Assembly: GCA_965603825.1 (NCBI GenBank)
Contig: CBFDEM010000014.1
Span: 682,001-746,000 of the forward strand
Direction of reading: 5' to 3'
From: Blepharisma stoltei ATCC 30299
Lineage: Eukaryota; Protista; Ciliophora
Length of the DNA: 64,000 nt
The notes under the pieces were generated by a model that was not told the DNA's origin, searched no databases, and was given only the letters and a program-made list of their open reading frames with translations. This document shows positions 13,810 through 59,200 of this stretch, piece after piece; positions within the stretch are counted from its first letter, which is position 1, and each line of letters opens with the position of its first letter. The position numbers were made by a program, and so were the translations under genes.

Positions 13810-14036
13810 TAGAAGCAATTTCTTCATGAATAAGCATTGCTAATGAATTTAAAGAAATTGATGGGAATTTTTCTGCTATTATAAATGAGTATCAAAAAAT
13901 TCAGAATTCAAAGTTTAAACAGCAAAAAATAATTGATTTAATTGAGAATCATAATTTTGAAACAGCAATAAAATCAATAGAAGAAATGGACAATGATACT
14001 CGAGCTCAATCTATTGATATAATTAAGGAAAAATTA

Positions 14037-14195
14037 TATCATGCTTTACACTTTTTGCAAAAATAAGCGCACATGTGAATTCAAACTCCATTTGTGAATA
14101 AAATTCTAAATCTGGACTTATTAAATTTACAATATTCTACACATGGAGTTCGAATCCACATGCCAACTGCATTTTTTAAATAGAGAAAATCAGTA
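14037..14195. mobile_element. 159-bp TA-bounded IES-like insertion with internal inverted repeat in copy B
   Basis: TATAT direct repeats at 14035 and 14194. Removal gives IKEKLY-CGIEQLLKDAKE versus copy D IKEKVY-CQIENLLKDLKE. Imperfect terminal inverted repeat TATCATGCTTT / TATACTGATTT; ~30-bp inverted arms at 14072-14100 and 14133-14162; in-frame TAA inside. Confidence 0.78.
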
Positions 14196-21199: not shown

Positions 21200-21300
21200 A
21201 GATTTCTTACCTCAAAAAATTTAATGTTAGGAAATACCTTATATGTCATCAGTATTTGGCAGAAACAATCGAACATTCGGCAAGGATAAAGATGTTAATA
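21200..21300 (+). pseudogene. Tiny relic of a SecA-like domain paralogue
   Basis: Reads YMSSVFGRNNRTFGKDKDV, compared with YMPSVFGDNRRTFAIEKDV in copy E. Confidence 0.5.
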
Positions 21301-29426: not shown

Positions 29427-32400
29427 TTAAGTATATGAGCGAGGATACATTTCATCATAAAGTTTTACAGCTCCTTCTCCAGCTGATTTTCTTAAAACTT
29501 CTTTAGAAACTAAATCAGTAAGCCTTTCAGCTCCTGAGCTTGAATTAATATCAAGAAACCCACTTTGGCCTTTTGTTAATCTTGAAATCTGTTCAAATAT
29601 AGTTTTAGGTGAATTTTTGACATAAAATGCATTTACTGGAATTTCCTTACTTATAATTTTTGTTAATTCTCTCTCGTAATATTCAACACTACTATATTTT
29701 GATCATGATCTTCTACCTCGTATTATTCTAAATTCCTCAGAAGTATTTGGAGGCGCATCTCCAATCAAAATAACTTGCGAGATTGTATCATTTTGTGAAA
29801 CCTTATTAACATGTCATAGTCCTACTTCAACTGCTTCGTCTTCTCATTCGCCACCCCAAGCCGTCACATTTTCCATAAATTTTTCCAACACCTCTGATTT
29901 ATTTGTTCATGGAGAAAATTGTAATACATCGTCTTCACTTTGACACCAATTTCTATAAACGCAGTATTGAAGCTGAAAGCAATCTTGATTTATATTTTTT
30001 TTTGATAAAACTGCACAGACCCTTGAAAACATAGCTTTCACAGTATTTTTAGCACTTTGCATCAAATGCGACATAGATCCCGTTGCATCAATTAAAACAA
30101 TTGTTTTTGAAGTTCCAATATCAATGCTGAGCCCTTTGTTGAGCTCATCCAGAAATGCTTTAGCTCTTGATATATTATTATGCTGAAGAAAACTCTGAAA
30201 TTCAACTGAACTATCATGAAGAGCTTTAGATTCCTTCACATGGTCAGATTCGTTGTTATTCTTAATTTGATTATATTTATTTCTTTTTTCATTTAACCCA
30301 TCATAAACTGTTCCATTATTTTTCATATTTTCAATATCGTTTTTTGAAACCAAAAATTTTTCGAGCTCACTATCTAAAAGGACCATGCTGAATGATCCAT
30401 CTTGGCCTTGCCTTGCAGATCTTCCCATCATTTGAGCTTCTTCTGATATATTTTCTGAAAAAAATACTTGGATTACATGCACCCCTCCATTGGTCTCAAT
30501 TTCATGGTTTTGGCATTTAAAATCAGTTCCTCGGCCATAAGCTCTTGTTAATAATGATACTGTATTTGGAACTGTGGCTTTTTTAATCATAAAAACCCTG
30601 TCGTTTACACTTAAACTTTCTGTCATGAGCTGAATTTCATAATCAGTGTGTTTTAGGTCCGAAATATTATAAAAATCCATTAATTTTTTTTCATCTTCAA
30701 AAAATACCAATACAGCTCTTTTGCATCCTGCTTTTATGCCTTCTATTTTGCTATTTATTTCAGACATTATCTTCATACTATAATCGTCTTTATTTTCTAC
30801 ATAAATGTCTTTGTTTTTTCTAAAACGACGATTACTTTCCCCAAACACTGATGGCATGTAAGTATTTAATTTTATATTGTATTTATTCTCTATAATATTC
30901 TTTTCATAATCACCTAAAGTTTCTAGAGTTCCAGTGACTCCCATAATGTAATTGAATTTGTGAGGAATTTCTGCAAATGAAAACATTCCGCATCTAATTC
31001 CAATAAAAATATTTTCTTCTAAGCTTTCCTGAGATATATTTCCCTTTTCTTTCTCAAAATAGTATGCAAATAATGTATTATATCCATAAACAATATTAGA
31101 TGAAACTCCGTCGTTTTCTTTATAGCAAATTTTGTCATGCTGTACTATATAGTTATGAGACTCAAACTGTCTTACATGATTTATCATATCTTTAACAGCC
31201 TCTTCAATAATAAATTCAAACCCTGGAAACTGCTGACTGCATAGCCTATACTCAGGCGCATTTCATATTTCCATCAGTTGAGGTGTTTTTCTTATTTTTC
31301 ATACATAATCAGTCAGCTTTTTTATAGTATCATGCTTTAGCTTAGCAAGAGGCCGATATATATTTCCATAGAAGGTTTTGGTGAAGAAGACATCTACCTC
31401 ATCTATCAAAAGAATTTTGGGTCTTTCTACTGCTCCACTATATGATCCTGGGCATCTTCCAAATTTGATAAAATCTAAAACAATCGCTCTGATGTCACCT
31501 TTTGAGTTAATTTCATCTTCACAAAGTTTGTTAAAAGTTCCATATTTTATATAGGCGCAAATATTTAGGGCTGTGTATAAAGGTTGGAAATCTTGAAAAT
31601 CTCTGTTGCTTAGGTGCTCGCTATAGCAGGCGCAGTTCACACTGAATCCTAACAGGGCAAGTATGGAGCATAAAAATGCTAATGTTATTGATTTTCCTTC
31701 ACCTGTTAAAATTTGTACTAGATTATTTTTATTATTTGTATTTCCTTGATAGCCAATTCCAATCATTCGGAATATTGATAAGATTTGTATTGCATGTGGG
31801 GTAACAATTGTAATTTCTTCATCTTGATCATTTATATTTTGATTATATTTTTTAATATTTAAAAGCACCCATAACATTGCAATATAGGCTAAAAGCTCAG
31901 GTATAAACTCCTTAAATAGGCTAATATCTGGATTTGAAGAGGTTATGGCGTGATTTTTGGACACTATTTCTATTTGGCTTAATATTTGAGAGATAGCATC
32001 ATCCGCCCCTTTATCGCCGGCAATACTTCAATATATTCTGTGCAGCTCACTAAAATGTTCAGTGTAATCCCTATGCTTATCTTCTAACTCTCGCTTATTC
32101 AAATTTGTACTTTTGATTTTATCTAGCGCATAAGCTATACCATGCCTCTGGGTCTTATTCAACCATATTCTTTGCATTACACCCTCAAAAAATTTATGTT
32201 CTGAAATAATATAAAGTCCTAGTCCGGTTGGATGTTTTTCTAGTTTTTCAAAAATTGCTACAGGTTTGGCTTTGTTTTTCTTCCTAAAAGTTTCTAAAAA
32301 TTCATCCATTATTCTATCCAGTCCTTCTTTTAATAAAGGAAAATTATTTGAAATATTCTTCATTTTTATCATAGAATCTACAATTTCTGTCACCTTAGCT

Positions 32401-35400
32401 CCATTTTCAGCTTTTTCTCTTAATTCAACAGTTTTATTAAAAATTTTGGCTTCAATTCCTCTGAGTGGCTTTTTTCAATCAAAGCCTTTGATTTTTAGAT
32501 TTTTCTCAAACATAACCAAGCAATTATAATAAATTCTAATTTTAGTAAATTCTTCTTCCCAGATTTCATCTTTATTTATCAAATGTGAGGCGTCCTCTAC
32601 AATTTTATTCATTTCTCTGGATATAGAATCAATTGCTCCTGATTCTATTTTTTCAAAATTAACAACATGAGGATTTAGGTGATTTTTTAAGTCTTCAAAA
32701 TTTTTTATTTGGTCTAATCTGTCTTGGATCTCATTAGCACAGTCTTCAAGGAGTTTTTGGTGCTTTATTTCATCATTTTCAATTTTCAAGTTCGCAAAAT
32801 AATTACCCAGTTGGCATAAAGCTTCACTTAAGTCTTCTACAAGCCCAAAATAGCGAGGCAATTTTTTAATTCTTTCATAATCAATGTAAAAGTGATGAGC
32901 TTGATATTGTGATAAATATTCTTTAAAAATTCTGAAAAATTCATCCCATTCTTTAAGTTTGTTTAAAATTTTATTGCAGCTATGGGCATTTTTGGGAGGT
33001 TTAAACTCTAAATAGCTTTTATTGAGATTTGCATAAAAATCTGAAATTCCAACTAGCATGCTTTCAATAGTATTGTTAAAGTTAAAAATATTTGAAACTC
33101 CTTTTTCCTTTTCAAATTTAATTTTAAAGTCCATAAAAATAGTATGACATTTTAAGGCCTCAATGCATTCTGTGCTTTCATCTTTATGATCAATATTTAG
33201 AAGAGAATTATAAGCATTTTCCATAATTTTCTTAAGACTCTGCTCAATTTCAGATAGAATTCAGTCACTGTCTGATATTATATCATTTAATTTGCCTTTA
33301 TACTCCAAAACCCAAGCATTTTTGAAAGCTTTGTCTCACTCACCTTTATCAATAGCAAGGCATATTTGCTCTTTAAGATTTATCAAAATATCTCTTAAAC
33401 ATTTTTCTATATAATTAGCTTCCCATGACAAATTAATTTGCTGTGAATAATCAGTTCTTTGCCAATAATTATTATTTGTTAATTGTGGTTTATTGACAGA
33501 TTTGAGGTACATGGCACATAATTCTGTTATATTTTGTTCTTTCGCTAATATATTGATTTTTTCCATAGTATATTTTTTTTGCTCTTTATAGTTTTTCTTA
33601 ATGTCATCAATTAAAATGTTTGCTAAATTCTTAAAATCACTTGGTAAAAGCTCTAAAATTGAAGATAAATCATTGATAATTGACTTTTTTTCTCAAAAGG
33701 ATTTTGTGAATATAGTGCGTCTTATGCTATCGAATTTTTCATGAATTATATTTTTAACTTGGTTAGGACTATCTTTATATTTTGGGAAGTCGTTTGAAGC
33801 ATTTTCAAATTCTTGCAAGATTAGCCTAGGATTGCAATCTTTAAAATCATTAATTTTGCATGACCTCATAAGATTAACTATTGAGCGTGGCATATCATCA
33901 AGCTTCTTTTGAACTTTAGAAAGATGATCTTGAATTCCCCATCCAAATATCTTAGGTATATCACTTTTCAAATCTTGGATATTTTTCATTTTTACTTCAG
34001 CTTCATAATATTTATGAGAGGTAATAGCACTTTCAATTGCATACAGAAATTCCATAATTTTATCCATAAATATCTTTCTAATGTTTTCCTCTTGTTCACT
34101 GAATAATTGAACAACTTCTCTATCAAAAAAACTATAAAAATTATTTTTAAGAGGAGCGAGTTTTTGAAAATTTGAGCACATAGCGCTTATTTGGGCATGA
34201 TCTAGCTTAGAATTGTTTATATTTAAAGCGCTTTCTTTAAGGTCTTTCAATAAATTTTCAATTTGACAATACACTTTTTCTTTAATTATATCTATATTTT
34301 GATTATAAGCCCCTTCATCAAGCATTCTTATTAACTGAATTGCTCTTTCAAAATTATAACTCTCAATTGATTCAATTATATTTTGGCACGTTTGATCTTG
34401 CTTTGAATTTTGTATTTTTCCATAATCAATCGAAATTGTTACAAAATTGTCATTAACTTTGGCAAAGTCATTAACAATAGCTAATAGCAAAGACATTTTT
34501 TTCAATTCATTTTTATCAACACAGATTCTAAGTTTTTCATTGAAAATTGCGCATAAATTATTGAGCTCATTGGTAAAATGATCAAAATGAGGTTGATATT
34601 TTAAAAATTTGAAAAATGATTGAGATTTTGTATTCAATAGTAAAATTTCTTTGAAGCTTAAAGAAAACTGATAAGAATTTTTTTTTATAAGGGTTATATC
34701 CCAAGGCCTGTAATCTGAAATATTTTTTGTAATAATATCAAAGCATTTTTTTGAAGAAAAAAGATTCTTATTGTAGAATTGAGATAATATGGAGAAAATA
34801 TTTGAAGAAAAAGGCTCGAGAATTTCAGATAGCTCAGGTATAGCTCTGCACTCCATAATATAGTTATATGAATTTTCAATTTTATCAATGTCAAGCAAGT
34901 TCTTCTCCAATTTTTGACTGAAAATTTCAATAAAATTTTGAATTTTATTTATTTCTGTATCAATTTCTTCAATATTTTCTAATCCATATATTTTTTGGAT
35001 TTCTTCCTTTTTTTCTTCTTCAGAGCATAAAAATTCTTCCCTAATACTTATTAGTCTTTTTAAATCATTTTTTTCCTTCTCAATGTCTTGCAACTCTGGG
35101 TTAAATTCCCTTTTTATTATTTTCAGCGTTTCCTCAACTCTATCTTTGAATTTTATTCAGATATTTTTATCATAATTTTCCAATGAGGGAACAAACTCTT
35201 TCAATTGAAGAATTGGGTTTAATTTTTTAACAATATTATATCCTTGAGAAACATTAAAAGGAAAATTGATTCCTAAATCAATTTCTTTTAATTCAAATAA
35301 TAATTTGTCAATATAACTTTTGATCTCTTTTTCTATTCCAGAAAGTTCATTGCTATAAATTCCTTCTCTGAATTTTTCTATCCATTTTCCTGACTCAAGC

Positions 35401-38400
35401 CAAGAGAAACAATTGCGCAAGTGGTTAAGATCTATGGATTCAGGAGAATTTATAAAAGATTTAACAATTTCTTTTGCTTCTTTTCTGAAATAGCTGATTT
35501 TATTTATCAGTGAATTTAACTTTCTTGATAAGAAGCAGAAATTAAATACTCTATATCAGGTATCTCCATTAAAAGGCTAAATTCATCAAATTTTGGTTCA
35601 ATTTCAGCTACATTATACGTCTCTTCATTATTAATAAATGATATCACATCATCCTTAGCCTTATCAAAGTATTGTTGATATACAATAATAATTGATTGCA
35701 AAAACTCCTTTATTTCTAATTTGGAGATAAGAAAATTTAAAGAATGAGTATCATTAGCTGATTTTATGATAGTTATATTTTTCTTAAGAATTTCTATATC
35801 GTTTTTTGCAATGTATCCTTTGTTTAATAGTGCAATTGATTTTTCACATCTTTGCTTTAAGCTTGAAACAAACTTATTTAAAATAATACTATATTTTTCA
35901 TTTAAGGAATCTAAATTCAAATGGCCTAAAACAATTCCTAATAATTTTTTTGCTTGCAATAAAGTATTAGCAAAGCTCTCAAAATTATCATTCTTCGTAA
36001 AAAATTCAGCAGAAGACAATAAGCTTTCAATAAGATTTATATATTCTCTACAAATACCTTCATAATTTGGTGTCACATCTTCAAATGTTTCACTCAAAAG
36101 TTTTGCATTATTTAATTGTGCTTTCAAGATATAAGAATCAATATTTTCAGATTTTAAGTTTAGATGAGCAAGACTGAGCTTCGAGATAATATTGGTTACC
36201 ATTGCAGCTGATTTTACTGTTTCGCCTTTTAAATGGCTTTCCCTTATTTCTTCTGACGTTTTAAGAGAATTATAAATTTCTTTATAAGCTTTTATATTAG
36301 CTTCATCTAAAGTTCCATGCTTATCAAGAAAGCTGTTAAACTGAGCAACTGTATTCTCATATGTATCATTAGTTTTTTTGATTACAGACTCAACACAGCT
36401 AATATATTGTGGCTCAAACTGTGCAAATTGGCTTGCTAGATATTTAAGATCGTCCAATTTATATTTTATTATCTCATAATTCATTGAATTTAAGGCCTTT
36501 TCAATATCTTTTGAATAAATCAATACTTGATTTTTTATAGAAAGGCGTGAGTCTTCAGTTATAAAACTTTCAAAAGCATTTTTTGGGTCTTCTATTGGCT
36601 CTCTTTCCAATATTTTTCTGATCAATTCTTGTGGATCATCTTTTAATGGGTCAATAGTTATGGCGCCGTTTTTAGTTTTATTTTTTATATCATTTAAAAT
36701 ATGGAGAAACGCTTCATCAGGTATCTCAATTTTTCTGATAGCATTATTCACCAACGCATGTATATTAGAAGCATCTTTCTTTTTATACTTTGTAAATGCA
36801 TATGTAAACGAATTGCTATATTTATTGAAATTAGGGACAAGTCTGGCCAATGTGTGGGCCAATTTTTTGACTCCTTCAAATCTATCACCTTCAGTTTTGC
36901 TGCTTAATAAAATCAATGGTCTGACACTTCTGCATTTTTTAACATATTCAACAATACTGATTGTGTTTGCTATATCAACTTCTGCTCCGCTTGTATCCAG
37001 TAACCCTGGAGTATCACATAGAAAAATAGTCTCTTGAGAATCTTTTATATTTATTGGCACCAAAGTGATGTATCTAGTCTCTGATTGTGCATGCGATGAA
37101 ATTGATATATTTTTTAATGTGGGATTTTTTATAGCAACTGCTTTGATATGCCTCACGCCATCTTCCAGAATTCTATCTAATTTGGATCCGCACAAAAAAT
37201 GAGTTGTTGTTGATTTTCCTGCACCTGTGACCCCAATCAACAAAATAATATCTTTATTTTCTATATTTCCAGAGAATTGAGCTGATTTGCTGATTAAGCG
37301 AGAAAGTTCCTTTATGTTAATAGGGCGAATATACTCTTTGAGGAGTTTTTCTGTGTCTTTAATTAAATTTTCCCAGTTTTTATTTTCAAAATTTTCCTTA
37401 AAGCTAAAAATAAGTTTTCTTGGGAAATTTCCTTGAGCACTTTGATTTAGAAATTCAAGAAAATTTCTGAACTCATCATAAGGATCTATAGTCCCAATTT
37501 TTTGGTGAATATCTAATTTTTGACTAAGATCATAGCTTTTATAATAGGCATAGCATAAAATGCTCGTTAAAAACCTTTCAGTACAGCGGGGATATGACAA
37601 AATATCGCTCAGCATTCCTTCAAGAAAATCTAGTTGCTTTATATTTTCAACTTCCTTAGGATCTAAAATTATCATTGATTTTAAAACAATTCTTTTGTAA
37701 ATAGAATTCAAATTTTCCAAATCAGCAAGTGTATTTTCTTCATTTTTTGCTTCTTCTAGTCTTTTTCTTTTAAGGCAAAATGAAATATTTTCTTTTGTGT
37801 CATATATCATTTCTTCCAATTTTTCAGGGTTTTCAATATGATATTTACTTAGCCCTTGCTCCAGCTCATATTCTAAATTTTCTGCATCAAAAGTATTTGC
37901 ATTATGCCTATTCTCTTCATTCTCCTCTTTCGCTGTTTTTATTTCTTTATGTAATTCTTGTAATCTTTCAAGTCCTCTTAGCCTATTAATTGCTGCTTCT
38001 TCATCTTCAATTAATTTTTTTCTATGATAAAAAGCAATATCTTCTTTCACTTCTTCAATTTTTCCAGTTAATTTATTTGCGTCATCAATTTCATAAAGCC
38101 TCATTAACGCATTCATTTCGTGCTCATTTTTATTTTCTGCATTATTTTTTTTCAGATTGCTTTTTTTGTCGTTGACTTCACTCTCACCAAGAGAATCTTG
38201 GATAATTTCAAATGAATTTTCAATGTTTTCTTCTTTTATAATTTCTATTTCTACACTTAAAATTTCGTCATTATTACTCGGGATAGTCAGCCATGTTTTC
38301 AGAGGGAGATTTTGGCTAAGGTCAATTAAAGTTGATCCAAATAGCTTTTTTTCATCAAGTACTTGCATATAAAAACTAAACGTCAGCGAATCAACAAGAT

Positions 38401-38593
38401 CAGCATCCAATTGAACAGGATTGAGTACTGAGATTTGAGCCAAATCAAAAGGGGGAGATTGAAAGATGAGCTGGGATGTATGGGAATTTGACAAAGTATA
38501 AAGGAGTTCTAAAATTGCATTCGGATCTGCTATTCACTTGAATTCAATTTTGGTAACCTTAAAGGCAAGAAAAGAATTAGTTCTACTAACCAT
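29427..38593 (-). CDS. Giant C2-like/GTPase/SecA-like/vWA family protein, copy D (~3,055 aa) with one 1-bp frameshift near 35518 (real or assembly error)
   Basis: ATG 38593; all other ORF-track breaks are in-frame TGA; stop TAA 29429-29427. Adding one T near 35518 restores YQESLNSLINKISYFRKEA, matching B YQNVLSSLINKISFFKKEA. Confidence 0.85.
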
Positions 38594-39711: not shown

Positions 39712-42700
39712 TTAAGCATATGAAATAGGAAACTTCTTCCAATAAGCATTTACTACATCTTCTCCACCTACTTTTCCCAAAACTTGAGTAGAGACTAAAT
39801 CTGTCAGTCTCTCTGCTCCTGAGCTTGAATTAATATGCAGGAATTCACTTTTTCCTCCTGTTATTGCTGCAATTTTTTCAAATTTCTTTTGAGCATCACT
39901 ATAAACATAAAAAGCATTTATTGGAACCCCAAGCTCTTGAATCTTTAATAATTCTTTTCTATAGTGACTTACATCTTTAAATTTTGTGCTATTTCAGTAT
40001 TTTGAATTTTTACCTCTTTTTTCTTCAATGTCCTTAACAGTGTTTGGAGGACGATCGCCGATTAAAATTACTTGAGAAATTGTTTCATTTTTAATGGCAT
40101 TATTTACATGTCATAATCCGACTTCTATTGCTTCATTTCCCTGACCACCTTCAGATTTGACATTTTCCAAAAAACTTTCGAGAATATCCGATTTATTAGT
40201 TCATGGTGACACTTGAAGAATTTTATCATGGGAGCTATAATTTCTATATGCGCAGTATTGCAATTGAAAACATTCAGGATTGATCCCATTCTCTGATAAA
40301 ATAGTGCAGACCCGTTGGAACATTATTTTTACTGTATTTTTAGCATTTTGCAGTAAAAGGTCCATTGAACCAGTCGCGTCCATTAAAACAATTGTTTTAC
40401 AAATCCCGCTTTCGATATTAGTTCCTTTATTTAAAGTTTGCAAGAAAAGTTTAACTTTCTCTAGATCATTATTCTTAATAAAATTCAAAAAATTGCTTGA
40501 TTCATAATGCTGGGCTTTATATTCCTCTATATAGGTAGATTGATTTTCACTTTTAATTTGGTTAAATTCATTTCTTTTATTATTCAAATCATTATAAATT
40601 GAACTTCTATCTTTCATTTTTTTAATGTCTTCTTTTTGAACTGAAAACTTTTCTAACTCACTGTCTAAAAGTATTATGCTATAAGATCCTTTTTGACCTT
40701 GTCTTGCTGATCTTCCTTTAATTTGGATTTCTTCAGATATATTTTCTGAGAAAAATGTTTGTAGTACATGAATTCCTTCATTAGTCTCCATATTTTGATT
40801 TTGACATATAAAATCAATTCCTCGGCCAAAAACTCTTACTAATAATGTCACAGTATTTGGAACTGTTGCTTTTTTAATCATCATTCCCCTATCTTCTGAG
40901 CTCAAATTCTCTGTTATCAACTGAATGTCATAGCCGGAGTACTTTAAAGCTGATTCATTATAAAAATCCATTAGTTTCTTTTCATCTTCGAAAAACACTA
41001 GGACAGCACGTTTGGAGCCTGCTTTCCCTATTTTCTCATTTATTTCATTAATTATAGCCAAATAATAACCCTCACTGGCTTCTGCATGAACATCCTTTTC
41101 TATTGCAAAAGTTCTACGATTGTCTCCAAAAACTGATGGCATATAAGTTTGTATTTTGATATTATATTTATTTTCTATAATACTTTTTTCATAATTCCCT
41201 AAAGTCTCTAAAGTCCCTGTGACTCCCATAATATATTTGAATTTGAGAGGAATTTCTGCAAATGAAAATATGCCGCATTTAATTCCGATAAAAATATTTT
41301 CGTTTAAGCTTTCTTGTGTGATACTTCCTTTTTCATGCTCAAAATAATAAGCAAATAGTGTATTATATCCATAATTCTTATTAAATGAAATTCCGTCATG
41401 CTCTTTATACCCAATTTTATCATATTGGACTATATAATCATGCGAAGCAAATTGTTGTATATGAATTTTCATGTCTTTTACAGCTTCTTCAATAATAAAC
41501 TCAAACCCGCGAAATTGTCTGCAACAATCTTTATATTCATTTGTTGTTCTTATATTTATATTTTTAAGCATTTCTCTAGATTTTCATATATAGTCTGTTA
41601 ATATCTTAATAGTAGGATGTTTCAATTTTGCTAGAGGCCTATAAATATTGCCATAGAAAGATTTGGAGAAAAATACATCTACTTCGTCTATAAGAAGAAT
41701 TTTGGGTCTTTTCATAGTATTATCAGTTATATTTGAGCTGCATTTAGGTCTAGGGCTGATTAGATCTAAGACTCTTTCTCTAATGTCTCCATTTGAATTA
41801 ATTTCATCTTCGCAAAGTTTGTTAAATGTTCCATATTTGATATATGAGCTAACATTTAAAGCTGTATACAAAGGTTCAAAATTTTCGAAATCCCTCTGAC
41901 TTAAATGCTCACTATAGCAGGCACAATTAACTGTAAATCCTAATAAGGCAAGCATGCAACTTAAAAAGGCCAATGTAATTGATTTACCTTCCCCTGTTAG
42001 AATTTGCACTAAATTATTTTGAAAGCCTACATTTTCTTTATTGCCAATACCAATCATACGGAATATTGACAAAACTTGTATTGGATGCAGTGCAAAAAGT
42101 TCCCTTTCTTCTTCAGTACTTGCATCCTGATTGTATTTTTTTATATTGCAAAGTTCCCATAGAATAGAAATATAAGCTAGAAGTTTTGGAATGAGACTTT
42201 TGAATGAGTTAAGGTCTATATCGGAAGAGTTCTCTGGGTGAATCCTTGAGGCTATTTCTGCTTCAGCTGCTGTTTGCCTTATAGCATTATCTATGCCTTG
42301 ACTATTGGCAATATCTATAGCATGAGTCCTGGAGGTTATTTCTATTTCAGCCACTATCTGACTTATGGCATTATCTATGCCTTCGTTATGAATAATAGGC
42401 TGGTACTTTATACTGTACCCTTCAAATTTATCAATGTATTCCTGATGCTTTTCTCGAAGTTCGTTTATATTTAATTGTGAGCCTTTAAGTTTTTCAAGTG
42501 TATAGTCTATTCCATAAGCTTGTGTCTTTTGTCTCCACAGTCTTTGCCTAACTCCTTCAAAAAACTTATGCTCATTCAGTATATAAAGTCCGGTTGAATG
42601 ATTTCCTAGTTCTCCAATTATTCCTAATATCATTCCTTTGCTATTTTTTCCAATTGTTTCTAAAGAATCATCTATAATTTTATGAAGTCCCTCTTTAAAT

Positions 42701-45700
42701 TTAGGAAAATTAATTGAAAGTTCTTTCATTTTTAGCAAAGGTTCAATTATTTCTTCCAGCTGTTTTCCATTCATAGCTTTGGTTTTTAATTCTTTGATTT
42801 TATCATAAATTTTACCTTCAATTGCTTGTAGTGTCGCTTTCAAATCAAGATCTGAAATTTTTAAATTTTTTTCGAAAAAGCCCAAAAAATTATAGTAACT
42901 CCGAATTTGATTAAATTCTTCATTTCTGATATCTTGCTTATCTATTAAAAGTAAAGCATTCCTAACAATTTTATTTATTTCATTGCTTATCGAGCCAATT
43001 GCCTTTGATTGCATTATTTCAAGACTAGTCTCTAGGTTTAAGTGATTTTTTAAGTAGCTGAAACTTCTGATTTGGTTTCATTTCTCTTGAATATTTTTTG
43101 CGTAACTATCAAGTAGTGCTTGTTGCATGATATCTTCATAATGAACTTTAAATTCTATGAAAAAATTGCTTAATTCAACCAATGCTTGAGTTAAATCAAT
43201 TCTAAATTCTGAATAACGTCACTGCTCTTTTATTTTGCTATCAAAACGAGTATAAGTTCGATTCTGTGATAAAAACTCTTTAAAAATTTTCAAAAATCCA
43301 TCCCAATCTTTAATTTTATTCAACGTCTGATTACACTTTAGGGAACTATTTGGAGGTTTGAACACTGTGTAACGTTTATTGAGTCCCTGATAAAAGTATA
43401 AAATTGCAGCATGGATACTTTCGATTTCATTTTCAATGGGGAAAATCTCTTTGGCTTTAGGTTCTGATTTAAAATTAGTTTTAAAATCCATAAGATTTTT
43501 GTAAAATTTAAATGATTCTACCAACTCGGTACTACTATCTTTATACTCAATATTTAAAAGAGTTTTTAAATTTTGATTAACTTTTCCATTGAGATTTCAT
43601 AATATTTCTTTGAAAATTGAATCACTGTCTTCTAATATTTTTTCTATCTCATTTTTTAATTCTAAAACGTGAGCTTTTTTAAATGCCAATTCTCAATTTC
43701 TTTTTCTAAGAGCATCATTTATTTCAATATTAATTGATGATATCATATTTTTCAGTTTATCTTTGGCATACTTTAAATAAGATTTAGAATAACGGGTTGA
43801 TTGGCTATAAAATTCACATAATTCCTTTATGCTTTGTCCTTCTACATAACTATCAATTCTTTCTCTAAAACTAGTTTTATCTGCTTTAAGACTTGCTTCG
43901 ATTTCTTTAATCAGGCTCTTAGCTGAAATTTTGATATCTTCTGGCAAAACATTAAGAACAGACGATATATTATGAATTTTTTCCTTTTTTTTGGCAGTAC
44001 TTTCTTTCTTAAAATTAATCTTAATATCGTATATTTTCTCATTTATCAAACTTCTAATTTCATTAGATTTCCCCTCATATTTTGGAAAATCTTTTGATGC
44101 TTTTTCGATAATCTGTAATGTTGAATTTAGAGGATAAACTCCTAACTCTTTAATTTCGTTTTTTTGTATGTGATCAATGATATTTTGGGGGAATTTATTC
44201 AGATTATCTTCGATTTCTAAAATTTTATTTGCAAATCTATTTACAAAAAGCCAGTTTAAATCATCACTTGTTGGGTATTGAATATTTTTCATTTTAATCT
44301 CAGCTTCATAAAATTTATTTATTTTTATATCATCTGATATTAAAAATAGGTAATTAGAAATTTTTGTCTCAAGATCTTTTTTGATTGATATCTCCTCCTT
44401 CTCAAATCTCTTTCGCGTTTCAGTGTCAAAGTAGAGGTAGAAATTATTCGCATATGCACATTTAACTTTTTTAAAATTCTCGATTATTATATCTATTTGG
44501 CCATACTTTAAATCACAAACATTAAGTTCCTTAGTACGATCTTTCATGTCTTCTAATAGATCATTAATGGCTTTATATAATTTATCTGAAATTGTATCTT
44601 TCACACTTGGAATTGGCTCACCAAGCTTATTTATCGTTTGTTTTAAACTATAAAAGTCATACTTCTCGATTAATTCAATTAATTCCATAAGCCTAGAATC
44701 TTGAAGTTGTTTATATTTTTTTGAAAGATCTGAATAAGTCTTATCAATTTTTGCAAGTTCATCAGCAATAAATAATAATAAAGTTATTGACTCGGCTTGA
44801 GTATTTTGATTAAGATTCATAAGTTTTTCATCTACATCAGAATATAAACTATTAAGTTCAGTTAAAAACTGTGCAAAGGGGTGCTCTAAATCCAGAAAAT
44901 TATAAAAAGTTGGAGATTTTGTTTTTAATGATGATATTTCTTGAAAGCTCGCCAATATCTGGCAAGTGTAAGCTCTTAAAGCATTCATATCAAAAGCACG
45001 GCGATTTTTAATAAAATCAGAAATAAATCCAAAGCGATTATTTAAACATTCAAGAAATGGCCCATACGCCATAATTAATTTTGAAAATATATTCGAATTA
45101 ACGATATCAGCAATGCTGTCAGGTAAAGGTTGTATTTGTTTGCATTCTTCAATATATTTATATGAATTTTCTAAATTATCAATATCAGGTATTTTGTCCT
45201 TCTTTTCTTTAAATATTTCAATTGTTTGTTGGATTTTACTTATTTCTTGATCAATTTCATCAATTGTCTTAAATCCGTTAGTTGTAAGTAATTCTTCGAT
45301 CTTCTCTGCGCTTTCTTCTTTTATATATTTATCATAGTCTTTCTTCACGATTTTTAATTTTTCTATTTCATTTAGTTGATGATCAATGTCTAATTCTGGA
45401 TTAAACTCATTTTTAATGAGCCTTAAAGTTTCCTCAATTCTTTCCCAAAATTTATCTCAAACAATTTTGGGATACTCAGTAACAGATGGAATATATTTTT
45501 GTAATTGAAGAATAAGGTTGGATTTTTCTGCTATTGAATATCCTTTTTGCACATTTGAAGGAGAGTTAATACCTAAATCAATGCTTAATAATTTACTAAC
45601 CAGATTGCCTACAATGCTTTTTGTAAGTTTTTTTTCTAAATCAGAAAGCACATTACACAATATCCCTTTTTTGAATTCTTCAAGCCATCTTCATGATTCA

Positions 45701-48700
45701 AGACTTGCTAAGGAATTATATAATAAGTTAATTTTTATCGATTCATGTGACTCGACAAATGATTTTATGTATTTTTTTGCTTCATTTTTTAAATTTTTTA
45801 TATTTTGAATTGAAAAATCTAAGATATTTTGATAAGAAGGAGCAATATTTGCGTTTATATCAGGAATCTCCTTTAACAAATTGTATTCATAAAATTTAGC
45901 TTGAATTTCATCTATGCTATGCTCTCCTTTTTTATCAGTTAAAGAAGAAGCAAAACTTTCAAAGTATGTTTTGTATTCATTAATAATTGATGGGACTAGA
46001 TCGTCTATTTTATTTTCTAATAAAAAATCTCTTAAATTTTGATCTTCAATAGCTGATTTTATTAAGGAAATATTTTGCTGAAGCCCTTTTATGTCGCTTT
46101 CTTCTATATGTCCTTTGTCTAAAAGTGTAATAGAACTATCATATTTTGATTTTAAGCTTGAAATAAGTTGGCTTAAAAGACTTTTATACTTTATAGACAA
46201 ATCTTCTAAGTTAATGATATCATGAGCAGCCTCGAAGCATTTTTTTACTTTTCGTACAGTCTCAGCAAATTTTCCATAATTATTTCGTTCCAAGTATGAG
46301 TCAGCTGATATAAGCGCTTCTTCGATTAGATTTATGTATTCTTGACTAAAATCTTTATAGCGAGCAGCAATTTCTTCAAATGTTTCACTTAAAATTTTTG
46401 TATTTTTTAATTGAAAATTTAGGTCTGATATCTCTGGTTCAATGCTTGCATGATTAAGGTTTAGCTTAAAGATAAGATTATTGAGCATTGCTACTGATTT
46501 AACGGTTTCATCTCTCAGATGGCTTTCTCTAATTTCTTCTGATGCTTTCAGAGCATGATATGCTTCTTGATAAGAAAATACATCATCTTTTTCCAAAATT
46601 CCATGATTGTCTAAAATTTTATTTAGCTTTTCAAGAGCATTTTCATATATATCTTTAGTCTTTTTTATTACATAATTGACGGATTCATCATATTGAGGTC
46701 TAAACTGTTCAAATAAATTCGCTATATACTGCAACCCATCTAAATTATATTTTATAATACCATAGTTGAAAGAATCAATGGCAACTACAATGCCTTTTGA
46801 ATAAACAGAAATTTGATTTTTTATAGATCGACTAGAATCTTCAGTTATGAAGCTTTCAAAAGCATCTCTTGTATTTCTTATAGGCTCGTTTTCCATTATC
46901 TTTTTAAGTAGCTCTTGTGGGTTATCTTTCAATGGATCAATTGTTATTACTCCATTTTTAGTCTTGTCTCTTATATCTTTCAAAATTTTCAAAAATGCCT
47001 TATCGGAGTTATTCTTTATTAATTTTATAGCATTTTTCACAGTGCCATGTATATTTTTAACATCTTCTGGGGAATATTTGGTAAATGCATATGTAAATGA
47101 GCGGCTGTATTTGTCAAAATTAGGGACAAGCCGAGCCAAAGTATGAGCAAGTTTCTTGATTCCTTCAAATCTATCTCCTTCAGCTTTAGAACTTATTAAA
47201 ATTAAAGGCCTTACACTCTTGCATTTCCTAACACACTCAACAATGCCTATTGTATTTGCAATATCAACTTCTGCACCGTTTGTGTCCATCAAACCTGGCG
47301 TATCACATATAAAAGCAGCATCTTGGGGAGAATTTATATTAATAGGTATTATAGAGATGTATCGAGTTTCTGATTCAGCACGTGATGAAATCGTAACATT
47401 TTTTAATAAGGGATTTTTTATGGCTTCGAATTTTATATGCGTTACGTTATCTTCTAAGACCCTTTTCATTTCCGAGCCACATAAAAAATGAGTAGTTGTA
47501 GATTTTCCTGTGCCTGTAAAGCCAATTAACAGAATGATATCTTTTTTTTCTAAATTTTCAGAGCATCGAACTGATTTATTAATTAGCCTGATAACTTCCC
47601 TAATATTAATAGGTCGAATGTGCTCTTTCAGAATTTTTTGAATATCTTGTATCGATTTATCCCATTTTTCATTTTTGAGATGTTTTTTCAAGTGAGAAAT
47701 AAGTTTTGATGGTAAAATTCCTTTAGGACCTTTATGTACGTAATCAATAAAGTAGTTAAACTCGATATTCGGATCTATATTCGCAAACTTTGCATGAATA
47801 TCTAATGACGGGTCAAAATCATAGCATTCATAGTAAGCAAAGCACAAAATATTGGTAAGAAATTTTTCTATGCAAAAGGGCATCGTTGAAATATCATCAA
47901 TCATTGCTTCAATAATCTCTATTTTTTTATTCTTGTCACCTTCTTTAGCATCTATAGCTATCATAGATTTTGAGCTAAGCTTTTTGTAAATGGAGAGCAG
48001 TTTTTCCAAATCAGCAAGATTATTTTCTTCAATTTTTGCATTATCTAATTTTTTCTTTCTGAGATAAAAAGAGATATTTTCTTTTGTTTCAATTATTTTT
48101 TCTTCAATTTGTTGAGGATTTCCAATCTCGTACTTAATTAATCCTTGCTTAAGCTCTTCATCTACATTTTGATTAATTTCTTCATGCAATTTTAGCAATC
48201 TCTCAAGATCTTGTAATTTCTTTTTTTCTTCTTCCTCAAGGTCATATTTTTTCTTTCTATTATAAAAAGCAATATCTTCTTTTACCTCTTCTATTTTTTC
48301 TGCGACACTATCTATATCTTCGATTTCATACAATCTTAGCATCTTATTAATTTCCTCCTCGATTTTATTTTCTTCAGTTACAATTTGTTGATTTTCGCAT
48401 TTTTCATGTTTATTTTCTTCACTTAGGCTTTCATGGTCTTCGAATTTTTCAATTTCTTCACTTGCAATCTGTTGATTTTCGCATTTTTCATTATTTTCAT
48501 TTATACTTTCCTGAGATTCGCATTTTTCATTATTTTCATTTATGCTTTCCTGATTTTCTCGTTTTTCATATTCTTTACTTACACTTTGTTGATTTTCGCA
48601 CCCTTCATCTTTATTTTCTTCACTTATTCTGTGCTGATTTTCGCATTTTTCATTTTCTTCACTTAAAATTTGCTGACTTTCGCATTTTTTGTTTTTATTC

Positions 48701-50055
48701 TCTTCACTTTTTCTTTCCTGATTTTCGCATTTTTCATCTAAAATTAACTGATTTTTGGATTTCTCGCTTTTATTTTCTTCACTTGTGCTTTCTTGACTCT
48801 CGCATTTTTTATTTTCTTCACTAATAGTGTGCTGATTTTCGCATTTCTCACTTTCTTCACTTATGTTTTTATTTTCTTCACTTATAGTGTGCTGATTCTC
48901 GCATTTCTCATTTTTTTCATTTATGCTTTCCTGGTTTTCGCATTTTTCATTTTTATTTTCTTCACTTTCGCCTTGCTCTTTTGTATGCTTTTCTCTTATG
49001 CTTGGCTGATTTTCGCATTTTTCATTTTCACTTAAAACTTCGCTTTCACTCAAGAATTTGTGAAGGGTTTTGATGTTTTCTTCATTGATAAATTCGATTT
49101 CTCCACTTAAAATTTCCTCAGAATCGAAAATTATCATTGATTTTAAAACAATTCTTTTGTAAATAGAATTCAAATTTTCCAAATCAGCAAGTATATTTTC
49201 TTCATTTTTTGCTTCTTCTAGTCTTTTTCTTTTAAGACAAAATGAAATATTTTCTTTTGTGTCATATATCATTTCTTCCAATTTTTCAGGGTTTTCAATA
49301 TGATATTTACTTAGCCCTTGCTTCAGCTCACATTCTAAATTTTCTTCCTCAAAAGTGCTTGCATTATGCCTATTCTCTTCATTCTCCTCTTTTGCTGTTT
49401 TTATTTCTTTATGTAATTGCTGTAATCTTTCAAGTCCTCTTAGCCTATTATTTGCTGCTTCTTCATCTTCAATTAATTTTTTTCTATGATAAAAAGCAAT
49501 GTCATCCTTCACATCTTCAATTTTTTCAGTTAATTTATTTACGTCATCAATTTCATAAAGGCTCAATAACTCATTCATTTCCTGCTCATTTTTATTTTCT
49601 GCATTATTTTTTTTCAGATTGTATTTTTTGTCGTTGGCTTCACTTTCATCAAGAGAATCTTGGATAATTTCAAATGAATTTTCAATGTTTTCTTCTTTTA
49701 TAATTTCTATTTCTACACATAAAATTTCGTCATTATTACTTAGGATATTCAACCATGCTTTCAGAGGGAGATTTTGGCTAAGATCAATTAAAGTTGATCC
49801 AAATAGCTTTTTTTCATTGAGGACTTGCATATAAAAACTAAACGTCAGCGAATCAAAAAGATCAGCATCCAATTGAGCAGGATTGAGGACTGAGATTTGA
49901 GCCAAATCAAAAGGGGGAGATTGAAAGATGAGTTGGGACGTATGAGAATTTGACAAAGTATAAAAGAGTTCTGAAATTGCACTCGGATCTGCTATTCACT
50001 TGAATACAATTTTGTTAACCTTAAAGACAAGAAAAGAATTATTTCTACTAACCAT
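39712..50055 (-). CDS. Giant C2-like/GTPase/SecA-like/vWA family protein, copy E, intact, 3,447 aa
   Basis: ATG 50055 to TAA 39714-39712 in one frame with only TGA interruptions. GFTGTGKST (~47500-47523), DTPG, AFTKY; QILTGEGKS (~41980-42006), DEVD (~41680), GVTGT, GRGIDF, QIKGRSARQG (~40700); vWA DATGSM (~40370), GGQGNEA, VILIGD. Confidence 0.92.
48370..49035 (-). repeat. Coding EKCENQ array in copy E (~15 subunits)
   Basis: Same subunits as in A at 2095-3880, but a shorter array. Confidence 0.9.
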
Positions 50056-56253: not shown

Positions 56254-59200
56254 ATGATTAGCAAAAATAGCTCTTCCTTAACCTTCAAAGTCAACGAAGT
56301 TGAATTTATGCCAAGTTGAGAGTCAGATGCCAATATAGAGCTCAGCTATATACTGACAAATTCCCAAACCTCTCAAATCATCTTTCAGTCTTCCACTTTT
56401 AAGCCATCGCAAGTTTCCAGCCTTCCTCCAGTTCGATTGCAGCCAAATGATCTTAGCTTTCTAGTTCTCAGTTTCTATATGAAGGTGATTGATGGCCAAA
56501 AGCTGCTGGGATCATCATTAGTTAGTCTCAGCCCAAAAACATGATTAAAGATTCCTAGCGATGGTGAAGAAATTTTAAGTGTAGAAATCGAATTTATCAA
56601 TGAAGAAAACATTGAAACCCTTCACAAATCCTTGAGTGAAAGCGAAGTTTTAAGTGAAAATGAAAAATGCGAAAATCAACAGATTGCAACTGAAGAAAAT
56701 AAAATCGAGGAGGAAATTAATAAGTTGCTAAGATTGTATGAAATCGAAGATATAAATAGTGTCGCAGAAAAAATAGAAGAGGTAAAAGAAGATATTGCTT
56801 TTTATAATAAAAAGAAAAATCATGACTTTGAGGAAGAAGAAAAAAAGAAATTACAAGATCTTGAGAGATTGCTAAAATTGCATGAAGAAATTAATCAAAA
56901 GGCTAGCGTTATTGAGGAAGAAAATTTAGATGAAGAGCTCAAGCAAGGATTAATTAAGTACGAGATTGGAAATCCTCAACAAATTGAAGAAAAAATAAAT
57001 GAAACAAAAGAAAGTATCTCTTTTTATCTCAGAAAGAAAAAATTAGATAATGCAAAAATTGAAGAAAATAATCTTGCTGATTTGGAAAAACTGCTCTCCA
57101 TTTACAAAAAGCTTAGCTCAAAATCTATCATAGCTATAGGTGCTAAAGAAGGTGACAATAATAGAAAAATTGAGATTATTGAAGCAATGATTGATGATAT
57201 TTCAACGATGCCCTTTTGTATAGAAAAATTTCTTACCAGTATTTTGTGCTTTGCTTACTATAAATTCTATGGTTTTGACCCGTCATTAGATATTCATGCA
57301 AAATTTGCGAATATAGATCCGAATATCGAGTTTGGCTATTTTATTGATTATTTAAATCAAGGTCCTAAAGGAATTTTACCATCAAAACTTATTTCTCGCT
57401 TTGAAAAACATCTCAAAAATGAAAAATGGGATAAATCGATACAAGATATACAAAAAGTTCTGAAAGAGCACATTCGACCTATTAATATTAGGGAAGTTAT
57501 CAGGCTAATTAATAAATCAGTTCGATGCTCTGAAAATTTAAAAAATAAAGACATTATTCTGTTAATTGGCTTTACAGGCACAGGAAAATCTACGACTACT
57601 CATTTTTTATGTGGCTCGGTAATGAAAAGGGTCTTAGAAGATAACGTAACGCATATAAACTTCGAAGCCATAAAAAATCCCTTATTAAAAAATGTTACGA
57701 TTTCATCACGTGCCGAATCAGAAACTCGATACATCTCTATAATACCTATTAATATAAATTCTCCTCAAGATGATGCTTTTATATGTGATACGCCAGGCTT
57801 GATGGACACAAACGGTGCAGAAGTTGATATTGCAAATACAATAGGCATTGTTAAGTGTGTTAGGAAATGCAAGAGTGTAAGGCCTTTAATTTTAATAAGT
57901 TCTAAAGCTGAAGGCGATAGATTTGAAGGAGTCAAGAAACTTGCTCATGCTTTGGCTCGGCTTGTCCCTAATTTTGACAAATACAGCTGCTCATTTACAT
58001 ATGCATTTACCAAATATTCCCCAGAAGATGCTAAAAATATACATGGCATTGTGAAAAATGCTATAAAATTAATAAAGAATAACCCCGATAAGGCATTTCT
58101 GAAAATTTTGAAAGATATAAGAGACAAGACTAAAAATGGAGTAATAACAATTGATCCATTGAAAGATAACCCACAAGAGCTACTTAAAAAGATAATGGAA
58201 AACGAGCCTATAAGAAATACAAGAGATGCTTTTGAAAGCTTCATAACTGAAGATTCTAGTCGATCTATAAAAAATCAAATTTCTGTATATTCAGAAGGTA
58301 TTACAGCTGCCATTGATTCTTTCAACTATGGCATTATAAAATATAATTTAGATGGATTGCAATATATAGCGAATTTATTTGAACAGTTTAGGCCTCAATA
58401 TAATGAATCCGTCAATTATGTAATAAAAAAGACTAAAGATATATATGAAAGTGCTCTTGAAAAACTAAATAAAATTTTAGACAATCATGGAATTTTGGAA
58501 AAAGATCATGTATTTTTTTATCAAGAAGCATATCTTGCTCTGAAAGCATCAGAAGAAATTAGAGAAAGTCATCTGAGAAATGAAACCGCTAAATCAGTAG
58601 CAATGCTCAATAATCTTATCTTTAAGCTAAACCTTCATCATGCAAGCATTGAACCAGAGAAATCATACCTATATTTTCAATTAAAAAATACAAAAATTTT
58701 AAGTGAAACATTTGAAGAAATTGCTGCTTGCTATAAAGATTTTAGTAAAGAATATATAAATCTAATTGAAGATGCGCTTATATCAGCTGACTCATACTTG
58801 GAACGAAATAATTATGAAAAATTTGCTGAGACTGTACTGAAAGTAAAAAAATGCTTCGAGGCTGCCTATGATATCATTAACTTAGAAGATTTGTCTATAA
58901 AGTATAAAAGCCTTTTAAGCCAACTTATTTCAAGCTTAAAATCAAAATATAATAGTTCTATTGTACTTTTAGACAAAGGATATATAGAAGAAAGTGACAT
59001 AGAAGGACTTCAGCAAAATATTTCCTTAATAAAATCAGCTATTGAAGATCAAAATTTAAGAGATTTTTTATTAGAAAATAAAATTGAGGATCTAGTCCCA
59101 TCAATTATTAATAAATACAAAACATACTTTGAAAGTTTTGCTTCTTCTTTAACTGACAAAAAAGGAGAGAATTGCATAGATGAAATTCAAGCTAAATTTT

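Follow-up and report, generated by a model that had tools for sequence, protein, structure and literature searches.

A giant Blepharisma stoltei protein with a predicted AIG1-like GTPase, a SecA-clade ATPase and a C-terminal vWA domain: a candidate conflict-related machine from an undescribed family

SecA is the textbook motor tied to a single job, the pushing of proteins through SecYEG. In midasin (Rea1/Mdn1), a giant protein, long helical regions link an ATPase motor to a von Willebrand factor A (vWA) domain at the C-terminus; this domain carries a metal ion-dependent adhesion site (MIDAS) and grips substrates. SecA_DEAD domains are also found outside canonical SecA, as in the secondary SecA_DEAD proteins that adjoin type I secretion genes (Kamneva et al. 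2015, PMC4452313). In addition, the SecA DEAD-like protein lfa2470 of Legionella fallonii was judged by phylogeny to be of eukaryotic origin (Gomez-Valero et al. 2014, PMC4256840). Here we describe gene E of Blepharisma stoltei ATCC 30299, located in a 64,000-nucleotide stretch of DNA (the window, contig 14, positions 682,001-746,000) of a 41.5-Mb assembly of 64 contigs in which genome-wide searches were made. Gene E is intact and belongs to a large family, undescribed until now, of soluble proteins of ~3,000 residues that share a fixed core, formed by a helical bundle, an AIG1/GIMAP-like GTPase, a second bundle, a stalk of ~1,400 amino acids (aa) assumed to be helical, a SecA-clade ATPase and a MIDAS vWA domain, preceded by an N-terminus that varies by lineage. 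No description of this architecture was found in searchable papers, and databases automatically name the members 'SecA family profile domain-containing protein'.

The single open reading frame of 3,447 aa reported in the initial annotation of the window was found on the minus strand with TGA read as tryptophan. The frame contains 11 in-frame TGA codons and no internal TAA or TAG, as compared with 161-196 TAA codons in each of the other frames. Its translation with TGA as tryptophan is identical to the public database protein P0153, so the public gene model is likewise intron-free. TGA codons 2824, 3285, 3315 and 3354 fall in alignment columns occupied by tryptophan in 71/71, 69/71, 52/71 and 69/71 homologues, respectively, and the conservation of these four columns across many taxa indicates that TGA encodes tryptophan in gene E. 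Two further N-terminal positions appear to be conserved TGA-encoded tryptophans within the paralogue set: a TGA at the equivalent codon 20-22 of copies E, D, F and A (window 49996-49998 in E and 38534-38536 in D), and a second one at codon 96-97 of F, B and A, where E has W101 of KAWLNI, presumably encoded by TGG.

All motifs on which the initial annotation had based its domain assignments were located in the protein: LTFSFYM (residue 70) in the N-terminus; GKST (850), DTPG (918) and TKY (992) in the GTPase; QILTGEGKS (2684), YSEHLSQRD (2714), IDEVD (2789), GVTGT (2944), RAVLVF (3016), GRGIDF (3077) and QIKGRSARQGQKGS (3111) in the ATPase; and DATGSM (3226), GNEA (3306) and VILIGD (3329) in the vWA domain. 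Furthermore, profiles, models and fold searches upheld the overall architecture proposed there, namely a GTPase, a helical stalk of ~1,400 aa, a SecA-type ATPase and a C-terminal vWA domain.

The choice between a SecA-type and an RNA-helicase ATPase had been set beforehand as a test, and SecA led by PDB profile, Foldseek and VIA. The Pfam SecA_DEAD model matched gene E at 37.2 bits against a gathering cut-off of 24.6, the generic DEAD model being far weaker (0.0024), and Helicase_C matched the second nucleotide-binding domain (NBD2), where NCBIfam SecA PRK09200 also aligned through its profile positions 404-603 (7.7e-9). Among the 15 full-length homologues, SecA_DEAD was matched by all and P-loop_SecA by six. 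When the first motor piece was run with phmmer against every sequence in PDB, 18 matches were returned, each of them a SecA chain, and the ATPase-vWA profile, built from a 71-sequence alignment (A2), reached SecA at ~1e-16, with the DEAD-box protein Mss116 as best non-SecA match (7e-5); the alignment was colinear, with query residues 35-489 on residues 95-543 of B. subtilis SecA. The AlphaFold2 model of residues 2640-3447, built on the same alignment, had a mean predicted local distance difference test score (pLDDT) of 88 and a predicted template modelling score of 0.83. In Foldseek searches of this model against PDB the top 36 matches were all SecA (4e-16 to 2e-9), followed by Hna, Dicer helicase, XPD and UvrB from 5e-8. 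Structural alignment with VIA-align gave Z 29.1 over 487 residues for SecA vs Z 22.5 over 311 residues for eIF4A, and the number of aligned residues rose from 327 with the bare E. coli SecA motor to 413 with SecA-N68 including the preprotein cross-linking domain (PPXD) and to ~490 with full-length SecA, the SecA alignments taking in NBD2 and reaching model residue ~610. The superfamily 2 (SF2) core was also aligned by VIA to eIF4A, DbpA, RIG-I, MDA5 and LGP2, at Z 21-22. All catalytic motifs of gene E are intact and invariant across the 71 homologues.

Altogether, Pfam, NCBIfam, PDB profile, Foldseek and VIA all placed SecA first. The gene E module is therefore an SF2 ATPase of the SecA clade, in which an insert occupies the PPXD position and a long helix stands at the start of the SecA scaffold helix. 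The insert is of ~130 aa and stands at the PPXD position in a profile colinear with SecA, without a match to the SecA_PP_bind hidden Markov model (HMM). Neither this HMM nor that of the SecA wing/scaffold (SecA_SW) matched gene E or its 15 homologues; the two-helix-finger region was unrecognised, and between NBD2 and the vWA domain the model holds only a single long helix and a short one. Since the PPXD and wing/scaffold HMMs are unmatched and identity to SecA is ~15-18%, the module is not a SecA orthologue. Its likeness to SecA consists of both nucleotide-binding domains with matching motifs, a large insert between motifs II and III at the place of the PPXD and the long helix after NBD2. Unlike SecA, the motor occupies residues ~2645-3210 of a cytosolic protein of 3,447 aa, in which a vWA domain comes next, and a partnership with SecYEG in the ciliate cytosol seems implausible. 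The secondary SecA_DEAD proteins mentioned above (PMC4452313) share the presence of this domain outside canonical SecA; they are bacterial, have no described GTPase, stalk or vWA domain, and their gene neighbourhood is unlike that of the bacterial loci found here.

The GTPase was less clearly placed by sequence, with weak matches of the gene E G domain to MMR_HSR1 (0.0013), RsgA_GTPase and FtsY- or SRP54-like P-loops, and AIG1 and GBP HMMs unmatched in gene E and 15 homologues. The AlphaFold2 model of residues 690-1260 (69 sequences, pLDDT 90) consists of a helical bundle, the G domain at residues ~838-1060 and a second bundle. A Foldseek search with the G-domain model placed GIMAP7 first (2.4e-6), followed by GBP1, Toc34, bacterial dynamin-like proteins, atlastin and mitofusin, and AIG1 appeared in six of the ten nearest ESM Atlas clusters. 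In an exhaustive VIA search GIMAP4 and GIMAP7 came first at Z 13.4, with MnmE, HflX and EngB at 12.2-12.7, within one Z unit. An SRP54/FtsY-type (SIMIBI) GTPase, suggested by the weak sequence matches, was discarded, the fold searches giving TRAFAC and AIG1-like proteins. The G1 motif GxxGxGKS(T), the G2 threonine of SET and the G3 motif DxPG are invariant; the G4 position reads FTKY, without the aspartate of N/TKxD. An AIG1-like TRAFAC GTPase is a fair description of the modelled domain, called septin/AIG1-like in the initial annotation, in so far as its nearest structural neighbours are GIMAP/AIG1 proteins; the near-tie with other TRAFAC GTPases and the lack of an AIG1 HMM match count against the closer assignment. 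The arrangement of a TRAFAC G domain between helical bundles is common to AIG1/GIMAP, GBP and dynamin-like proteins, with GIMAP4 and GIMAP7 as top structural matches, whereas gene E differs from AIG1/GIMAP proteins in the absent HMM match, the TKY at G4 and the placement of the domain within a giant multi-enzyme protein.

For the C-terminal vWA domain, the profile match in gene E was modest (VWA_2, 0.0047) and those of homologues were stronger (VWA_4, 1.8e-6; VWA_2, 5e-5). The last ~230 residues of the ATPase-vWA model (model residues 580-808) show beta-alpha alternation at high pLDDT, and Foldseek aligned this region to integrin beta I-domains (7e-7, ~250 columns). The sequence D-A-T-G-S at residues 3226-3230 forms a MIDAS-type motif, a predicted metal site, in which the first serine of DxSxS is replaced by threonine; D587, T589 and S591 of the model are invariant in 71 sequences, and the aspartate of LIGD is nearly so. 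The vWA domain ends the protein across the family, with a median tail of 3 residues. Model, integrin matches and conserved D-x-T-x-S motif all bear out the vWA claim. Midasin is the closest mechanistic analogue of this design, as SecA is the closest relative of its motor: both midasin and gene E encode giant proteins in which a motor and a C-terminal MIDAS vWA domain are connected with long helical regions. The two differ in the motor (SecA-type SF2 here vs a six-module AAA+ ring), in the additional GTPase of gene E and in distribution, which is patchy here and universal for midasin, and no sequence relationship exists outside the vWA fold. Pfam found no AAA+ domain in gene E, whose P-loop modules are limited to the GTPase and the SF2 motor.

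The first ~700 residues of the protein are specific to Blepharisma and comprise a ~125-residue module, two E/K-rich modules and EKCENQ-type repeats, and no homologue of residues 126-700 was found outside Blepharisma. The N-terminal module had been called C2-like, and this identity was dropped as unsupported, since nothing usable was obtained with Pfam on the isolated piece, with Pfam at E 10 and a PDB profile from the six-paralogue alignment, or with an ESM Atlas feature search. The related claim that the protein is membrane-targeted had rested on this module and is likewise unsupported: no transmembrane segment is present, transmembrane anchoring being rejected because the sole hydrophobic stretch is a buried segment following Walker A, and no lipid-binding domain was detected. 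The stalk, which spans ~1,400 residues from the post-G bundle to the motor, was matched by no Pfam or PADLOC model. Across the family, the G domain and the ATPase keep a conserved distance (median 1,863 aa, range 1,744-2,400), and the N-terminus before the core varies in length from 0 to ~860 aa. The coordinates of the domains and of the other copies in the window are collected in Table 1.

Table 1. Gene E, its domains and its paralogues in the 64,000-nucleotide window
Feature	Window position	Strand	Description
Gene E	39712..50055	minus	Single open reading frame, 3,447 sense codons and TAA; introns unneeded
N-terminal module, aa 1-125	49681..50055	minus	Common to paralogues (alignments A6, A7); part formerly called C2-like, without Pfam, PDB or Atlas match
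Lineage-specific region, aa 126-700	47956..49680	minus	Two E/K-rich modules of ~140 aa with EKCENQ-type low-complexity repeats between them
Helical bundle before G domain, aa 703-833	47557..47949	minus	Family motif MPxCxEK (alignments A1, A5); AlphaFold2 model helices 14-144, pLDDT ~90
TRAFAC G domain, aa 838-1060	46876..47544	minus	AIG1/GIMAP-like; G1 GFTGTGKST, G2 SET, G3 DTPG, TKY at G4
Helical bundle after G domain, aa 1061-1260	46276..46875	minus	AlphaFold2 model; low-TM Foldseek alignments to GBP1, atlastin, mitofusin and bacterial dynamin-like proteins
Stalk, aa 1261-2639	42139..46275	minus	Assumed helical; no known domain; dN/dS 0.73-0.77
SecA-type NBD1, aa 2645-2807	41635..42123	minus	Motif I GEGKS, Ia, II DEVD; SecA_DEAD above gathering score; dN/dS 0.15
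Insert between motifs II and III, aa 2808-2940	41236..41634	minus	~130 aa, at position of SecA PPXD
NBD2, aa 2941-3150	40606..41235	minus	Motif III GVTGT, V GRGIDF, VI QIKGRSARQG; Helicase_C and NCBIfam SecA PRK09200
Long helix after NBD2, aa 3151-3210	40426..40605	minus	In place of SecA scaffold helix; AlphaFold2 helices 514-555 and 559-569
vWA domain, aa 3211-3447	39715..40425	minus	MIDAS-type D-x-T-x-S and later conserved Asp; protein ends here
Copy A	1..4278	minus	N-terminal part only; gene runs past left edge of window
Copy B	9186..18990	plus	At least 3 pieces, in-frame stop, interrupted middle
Copy C	22053..29273	plus	Three frame pieces; match stops at query aa 2970, no vWA found
Copy D	29427..38593	minus	Two overlapping frames (frame break)
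Copy F	56254..64000	plus	Closest paralogue, intact, 3,042 aa = P0001; runs past end of window

In an exhaustive HMMER search, the first motor piece retrieved 1,259 cluster representatives with the E-value cut-off at 1e-3 and 922 with the cut-off at 1e-10. Many of these are proteins of 2,000-3,700 aa in which the matching segment lies around residue 2,000-2,900. Named relatives, 43-49% identical over an ATPase-vWA module of 843 residues, come from Tetrahymena species, the bdelloid rotifers Adineta and Rotaria (with many paralogues), Brachionus, Hydra vulgaris, Reticulomyxa and Hexamita, and one comes from a metagenome-assembled genome (MAG) of Gammaproteobacteria. Fifteen full-length members were aligned and share the same core and conserved motifs. 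The ciliate focus implied in the initial annotation was therefore too narrow, the same core being widespread in eukaryotes and present in bacteria. The N-termini of some other members carry U-box, RickCE-type (CE-clan deubiquitinase) or Ulp1-type peptidase domains, and precomputed matches add jacalin, GBP and AAA domains in members of the family. Adjacent locus tags on the same contigs point to multi-copy arrays in Tetrahymena, Hydra and bdelloid rotifers, and the tandem copies in Tetrahymena and Hydra indicate that the family is not a single-copy housekeeping gene elsewhere, an outcome that would have counted against the initial annotation.

A scan of 185,579 prokaryotic species, with one genome per species, identified 12 loci, nearly all in uncultured Gammaproteobacteria with small genomes and including a Legionellales MAG, and some of the encoded proteins begin with U-box or RickCE/Ulp1 peptidase domains. 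These members are uninterrupted open reading frames of 1,800-3,460 aa; one group of ~2,000-2,300 aa has no G-domain match, one member of 1,821 aa ends before the vWA domain, and divergent members of ~30% identity carry an N-terminal G domain and the full architecture. Their surroundings are bacterial, with NadA on a 2.9-Mb contig and genes for MFS (major facilitator superfamily) transporters elsewhere. Occurrence is sporadic, with 3/86 genomes in one order and 4/401 sampled across Gammaproteobacteria (~1%). No relatives were found in viral contigs, and a giant-virus origin was discarded on this ground. The lfa2470 protein of L. fallonii is likewise a SecA_DEAD protein of a Legionellales bacterium, matching the Legionellales and gammaproteobacterial members described here; its membership in the family is unconfirmed, and PMC4256840 gives neither its architecture nor its function.

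The maximum-likelihood tree built from the ATPase-vWA module placed each eukaryotic genus in a clade of its own, except for the interleaved Adineta and Rotaria, which indicates lineage-specific expansion. Blepharisma stood apart from Tetrahymena, which grouped with Hydra and Brachionus, and the bacterial sequences fell in at least three places, one U-box-bearing group being sister to a bdelloid clade. Approximately unbiased (AU) tests rejected ciliate monophyly (p 0.02) and a single split between bacteria and eukaryotes (p 0.0045). The tree was midpoint-rooted, a procedure sensitive to long bacterial branches; rooting with a SecA outgroup was judged unreliable at 15% identity and with the same long branches.

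Several observations were made on the neighbours of the bacterial genes. A TPR_1-type repeat protein of ~180-200 aa lies directly downstream of the giant gene at three divergent loci (L021:12217-12840, L025:12554-13084 and L028:13008-13619); the three proteins are 34-42% identical to each other, and giant gene and downstream gene may form a two-gene unit in which the repeat protein is a candidate partner. Two of the shorter forms (~2,000 aa, no G-domain match) have a downstream neighbour of 800-980 aa instead (L024:12662-15598 and L030:12493-14898), the two neighbours being 32% identical to each other and without Pfam match. The member at L021 is adjoined on the minus strand by a 2,116-aa protein with AMP-binding, PP-binding, pentapeptide and beta-propeller matches (14080-20430), with a WD40 protein nearby (20899-22224, minus strand), a domain content that looks eukaryote-like within a bacterial MAG contig.

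In Blepharisma, a tblastn search of the window with the gene E protein found six copies, A-F, in agreement with the number announced for these 64 kb. Genome-wide, there are ~9 copies, eight of them on contig 14 at 648-747 kb and a divergent one on contig 3. The tandem expansion with turnover described in the initial annotation is also borne out, the array being real and copies B, C and D being broken. Tiny introns of 15-16 nt were rejected as the cause of these breaks, at which no GT..AG candidates of this size were found, and B, C and D look like decaying copies. Gene E itself is 85% identical to D over residues 1-331 and 87-90% identical to F from residue ~311 onward, downstream identity between D and E being only ~50%. 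Because of this D-like start and F-like remainder, gene E is a D-type/F-type recombinant. At the D-type/F-type junction the end of the N-terminal module recurs as a second, incomplete copy (EILSGEIEFINEENI, aa ~314-328; within 47956-49680, minus strand), and this partial repeat marks the recombination point that made E chimeric.

Comparison of E with F (dS ~0.1) gave ratios of nonsynonymous to synonymous substitution (dN/dS) of 0.15 for the first nucleotide-binding domain (NBD1), 0.14 for the insert, 0.34 for NBD2 plus the long helix, 0.39 for the vWA domain and 0.40 for the G domain. These values show that the enzymatic domains of E and F are constrained. The stalk, at 0.73-0.77, is the fastest-evolving part of the core and is either relaxed or diversifying. 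The divergent pair E and F is separated by an unrelated gene (52942-54834, plus strand) matching PP2A regulatory subunit B56 (1.8e-14). In addition, a frame of 672 codons without TAA or TAG runs antisense to the EKCENQ repeats of copy A (2042-4057, plus strand; AT skew -0.55; no Pfam match) and is most likely a by-product of the repeat.

Related reads were found in four runs of one study only, whose RNA status was guessed. Contigs from these runs cover window positions 39692-42862, the 3' 3.2 kb of gene E, and little else, with 95-99% identity to the gene; they end ~20 nt beyond the stop codon and are absent from intergenic DNA, the shape expected of mRNA. Of the 40 differences listed, 20 agree with copy F and 19 with neither copy, and since the variants are thus half F-like and half of neither type, the contigs derive from a close relative or a mixture. 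The genome assembly holds ~15 copies of a 1.74-kb small-subunit rRNA gene.

We tentatively favour, at a probability of roughly 0.4, a conflict-related, NTP-driven protein-remodelling machine as the best reading of gene E, with a function deduced from architecture and evolution. The protein would act in the cytosol in host-microbe or other biological conflict. Its G domain would self-associate on the surface of a target in a nucleotide-dependent way, as do GTPases of the GIMAP, GBP and dynamin types, the MIDAS site of the vWA domain would grip an acidic residue of a target protein in the manner of integrin I domains and midasin, and the adjacent SecA-type motor would use ATP to pull or thread the gripped polypeptide. 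The variable N-terminus may set localisation or output, through a small module in Blepharisma and through a U-box, CE-clan deubiquitinase, Ulp1 or lectin domain elsewhere, and the fast-evolving stalk is a candidate recognition or spacing element. We favour a conflict machine because the tandem array contains broken members and a recombinant E and has multi-copy counterparts in Tetrahymena, Hydra and bdelloids; because the distribution is patchy, the tree discordant and the bacterial occurrence sporadic, in Gammaproteobacteria including a Legionellales MAG; because the stalk evolves fast and AIG1/GIMAP and GBP proteins, which are associated with immunity, come closest to the G domain; and because a MIDAS grip adjoins a SecA-type motor behind variable ubiquitin-system or lectin N-termini. 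The prokaryotic vWA conflict systems (Kaur, Burroughs, Iyer and Aravind 2020, PMC7159879) are reported likewise to combine an NTPase and a vWA domain with variable effector-type domains, sporadic occurrence and lateral transfer; they are multi-gene and use other NTPases, whereas the gene E family is fused in one polypeptide and mainly eukaryotic, and an occurrence count of 'SecA' in the text of that paper gave zero.

It has to be noted that several points weigh against a conflict machine. The PPXD and wing/scaffold regions went unmatched, so that the polypeptide clamp is only putative, and the SF2 core aligns well to RNA helicases and RIG-I-like sensors (VIA Z 21-22). The stalk value of 0.75 may reflect relaxed constraint rather than positive selection. 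PADLOC gave a weak mad8 match on the G domain only (6.4e-5) and none on the stalk or the ATPase-vWA module, and a known anti-phage defence family was rejected for want of a real match. In the AU tests the groups were named after the tree was seen, and long branches are involved. As the run contigs carry F-like and other variants at 95-99% likeness and their RNA origin is guessed, they do not show that gene E is transcribed. The conflict role as a whole is argued from architecture and evolution. A more ambitious version, which we regard as speculative and unlikely in its entirety, would have a SecA-type motor removed from the Sec pathway and combined with an AIG1-like GTPase and a MIDAS grip to give a giant immune machine that is cell-autonomous and common to protists, rotifers and cnidarians; this machine would extract or unfold proteins of intracellular invaders or of their vacuoles, and would have been captured by Legionellales-like bacteria and re-armed with ubiquitin-system domains as counter-weapons.

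Several of these observations would also be compatible with a housekeeping or structural machine that remodels membranes, organelles, cortex or extrusomes through endogenous substrates, with copy number reflecting dosage or neutral duplication. The strong purifying selection on the enzymatic domains and the 43-49% identity of the ATPase-vWA module across distant eukaryotes fit such a role, as does the resemblance of the G domain and its bundles to the membrane-remodelling GTPases atlastin, mitofusin and bacterial dynamin-like proteins. However, housekeeping genes seldom show arrays with pseudogenes, variable ubiquitin-system N-termini and a gene tree that departs from the species tree; in the list of named relatives the eukaryotic matches come from few lineages, with bacterial ones rare (4/401), and neither a transmembrane nor a lipid-binding domain was found in the protein, so we consider this explanation rather unlikely. 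That the SecA-like module works like RIG-I, Dicer or Hna, as a helicase, translocase or sensor of nucleic acid instead of polypeptides, which would make the protein a nucleic-acid-triggered switch, is unlikely in our view. Such an action would agree with the two-RecA SF2 core, the full set of helicase motifs and the Helicase_C matches, with the VIA scores of eIF4A, DbpA, RIG-I, MDA5 and LGP2, and with the Foldseek values of Hna and Dicer helicase (5e-8 to 2e-7); yet SecA is ahead by 11 orders of E-value in the PDB profile search, occupies the top 36 Foldseek positions and aligns ~175 more residues than any helicase, and the insert lies exactly at the position of the SecA preprotein-binding domain.

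The bacterial members raise a different question, namely whether the family consists primarily of giant effectors or secretion-linked proteins of Legionellales-like bacteria, with a SecA-like module aiding self-export and the eukaryotic copies being horizontally acquired passengers of different or no role. SecA-like ATPase domains are indeed predicted to aid secretion in giant secreted bacterial toxins (PMC8195603), some N-termini are U-box or deubiquitinase domains typical of effectors, the contexts beside NadA and MFS genes, one of them on a 2.9-Mb contig, are truly bacterial, and divergent members with the full architecture (~30% identity) lie at the base of the midpoint-rooted tree. That root is itself sensitive to the long bacterial branches, however, and the eukaryotic copies are under purifying selection and kept as multi-gene families in several lineages, while bacterial occurrence amounts to ~1% of the genomes sampled. 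The published opinion on lfa2470 (PMC4256840), a gene only possibly related since its family membership is unconfirmed, favours transfer from eukaryote to Legionella, and overall we find such a primarily bacterial effector or secretion role distinctly improbable. Finally, gene E could be a recent chimeric pseudogene or non-expressed copy without a function of its own, given its D-type/F-type recombinant structure, its broken neighbours B, C and D and run contigs whose F-like and other variants, at 95-99% likeness, do not show its transcription. A 10.3-kb frame free of TAA and TAG where every other frame has 161-196 TAA, together with intact catalytic motifs and dN/dS vs F well below 1 in the enzymatic domains, makes this hard to believe.

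A conflict-related remodelling machine thus remains our preferred, if tentative, reading of gene E. The family, with more than 900 clusters, puts a SecA-clade motor in the eukaryotic cytosol, fused with an immunity-type GTPase and a MIDAS vWA domain, and would provide a new context for how SecA-type motors handle substrates. Expansion, pseudogenisation, recombination and exchange with intracellular-type bacteria are the usual marks of conflict genes, and they make the family a candidate, open to testing, for innate defence both in protists and in early animals, for which Tetrahymena and Hydra, each carrying several copies, are tractable models.

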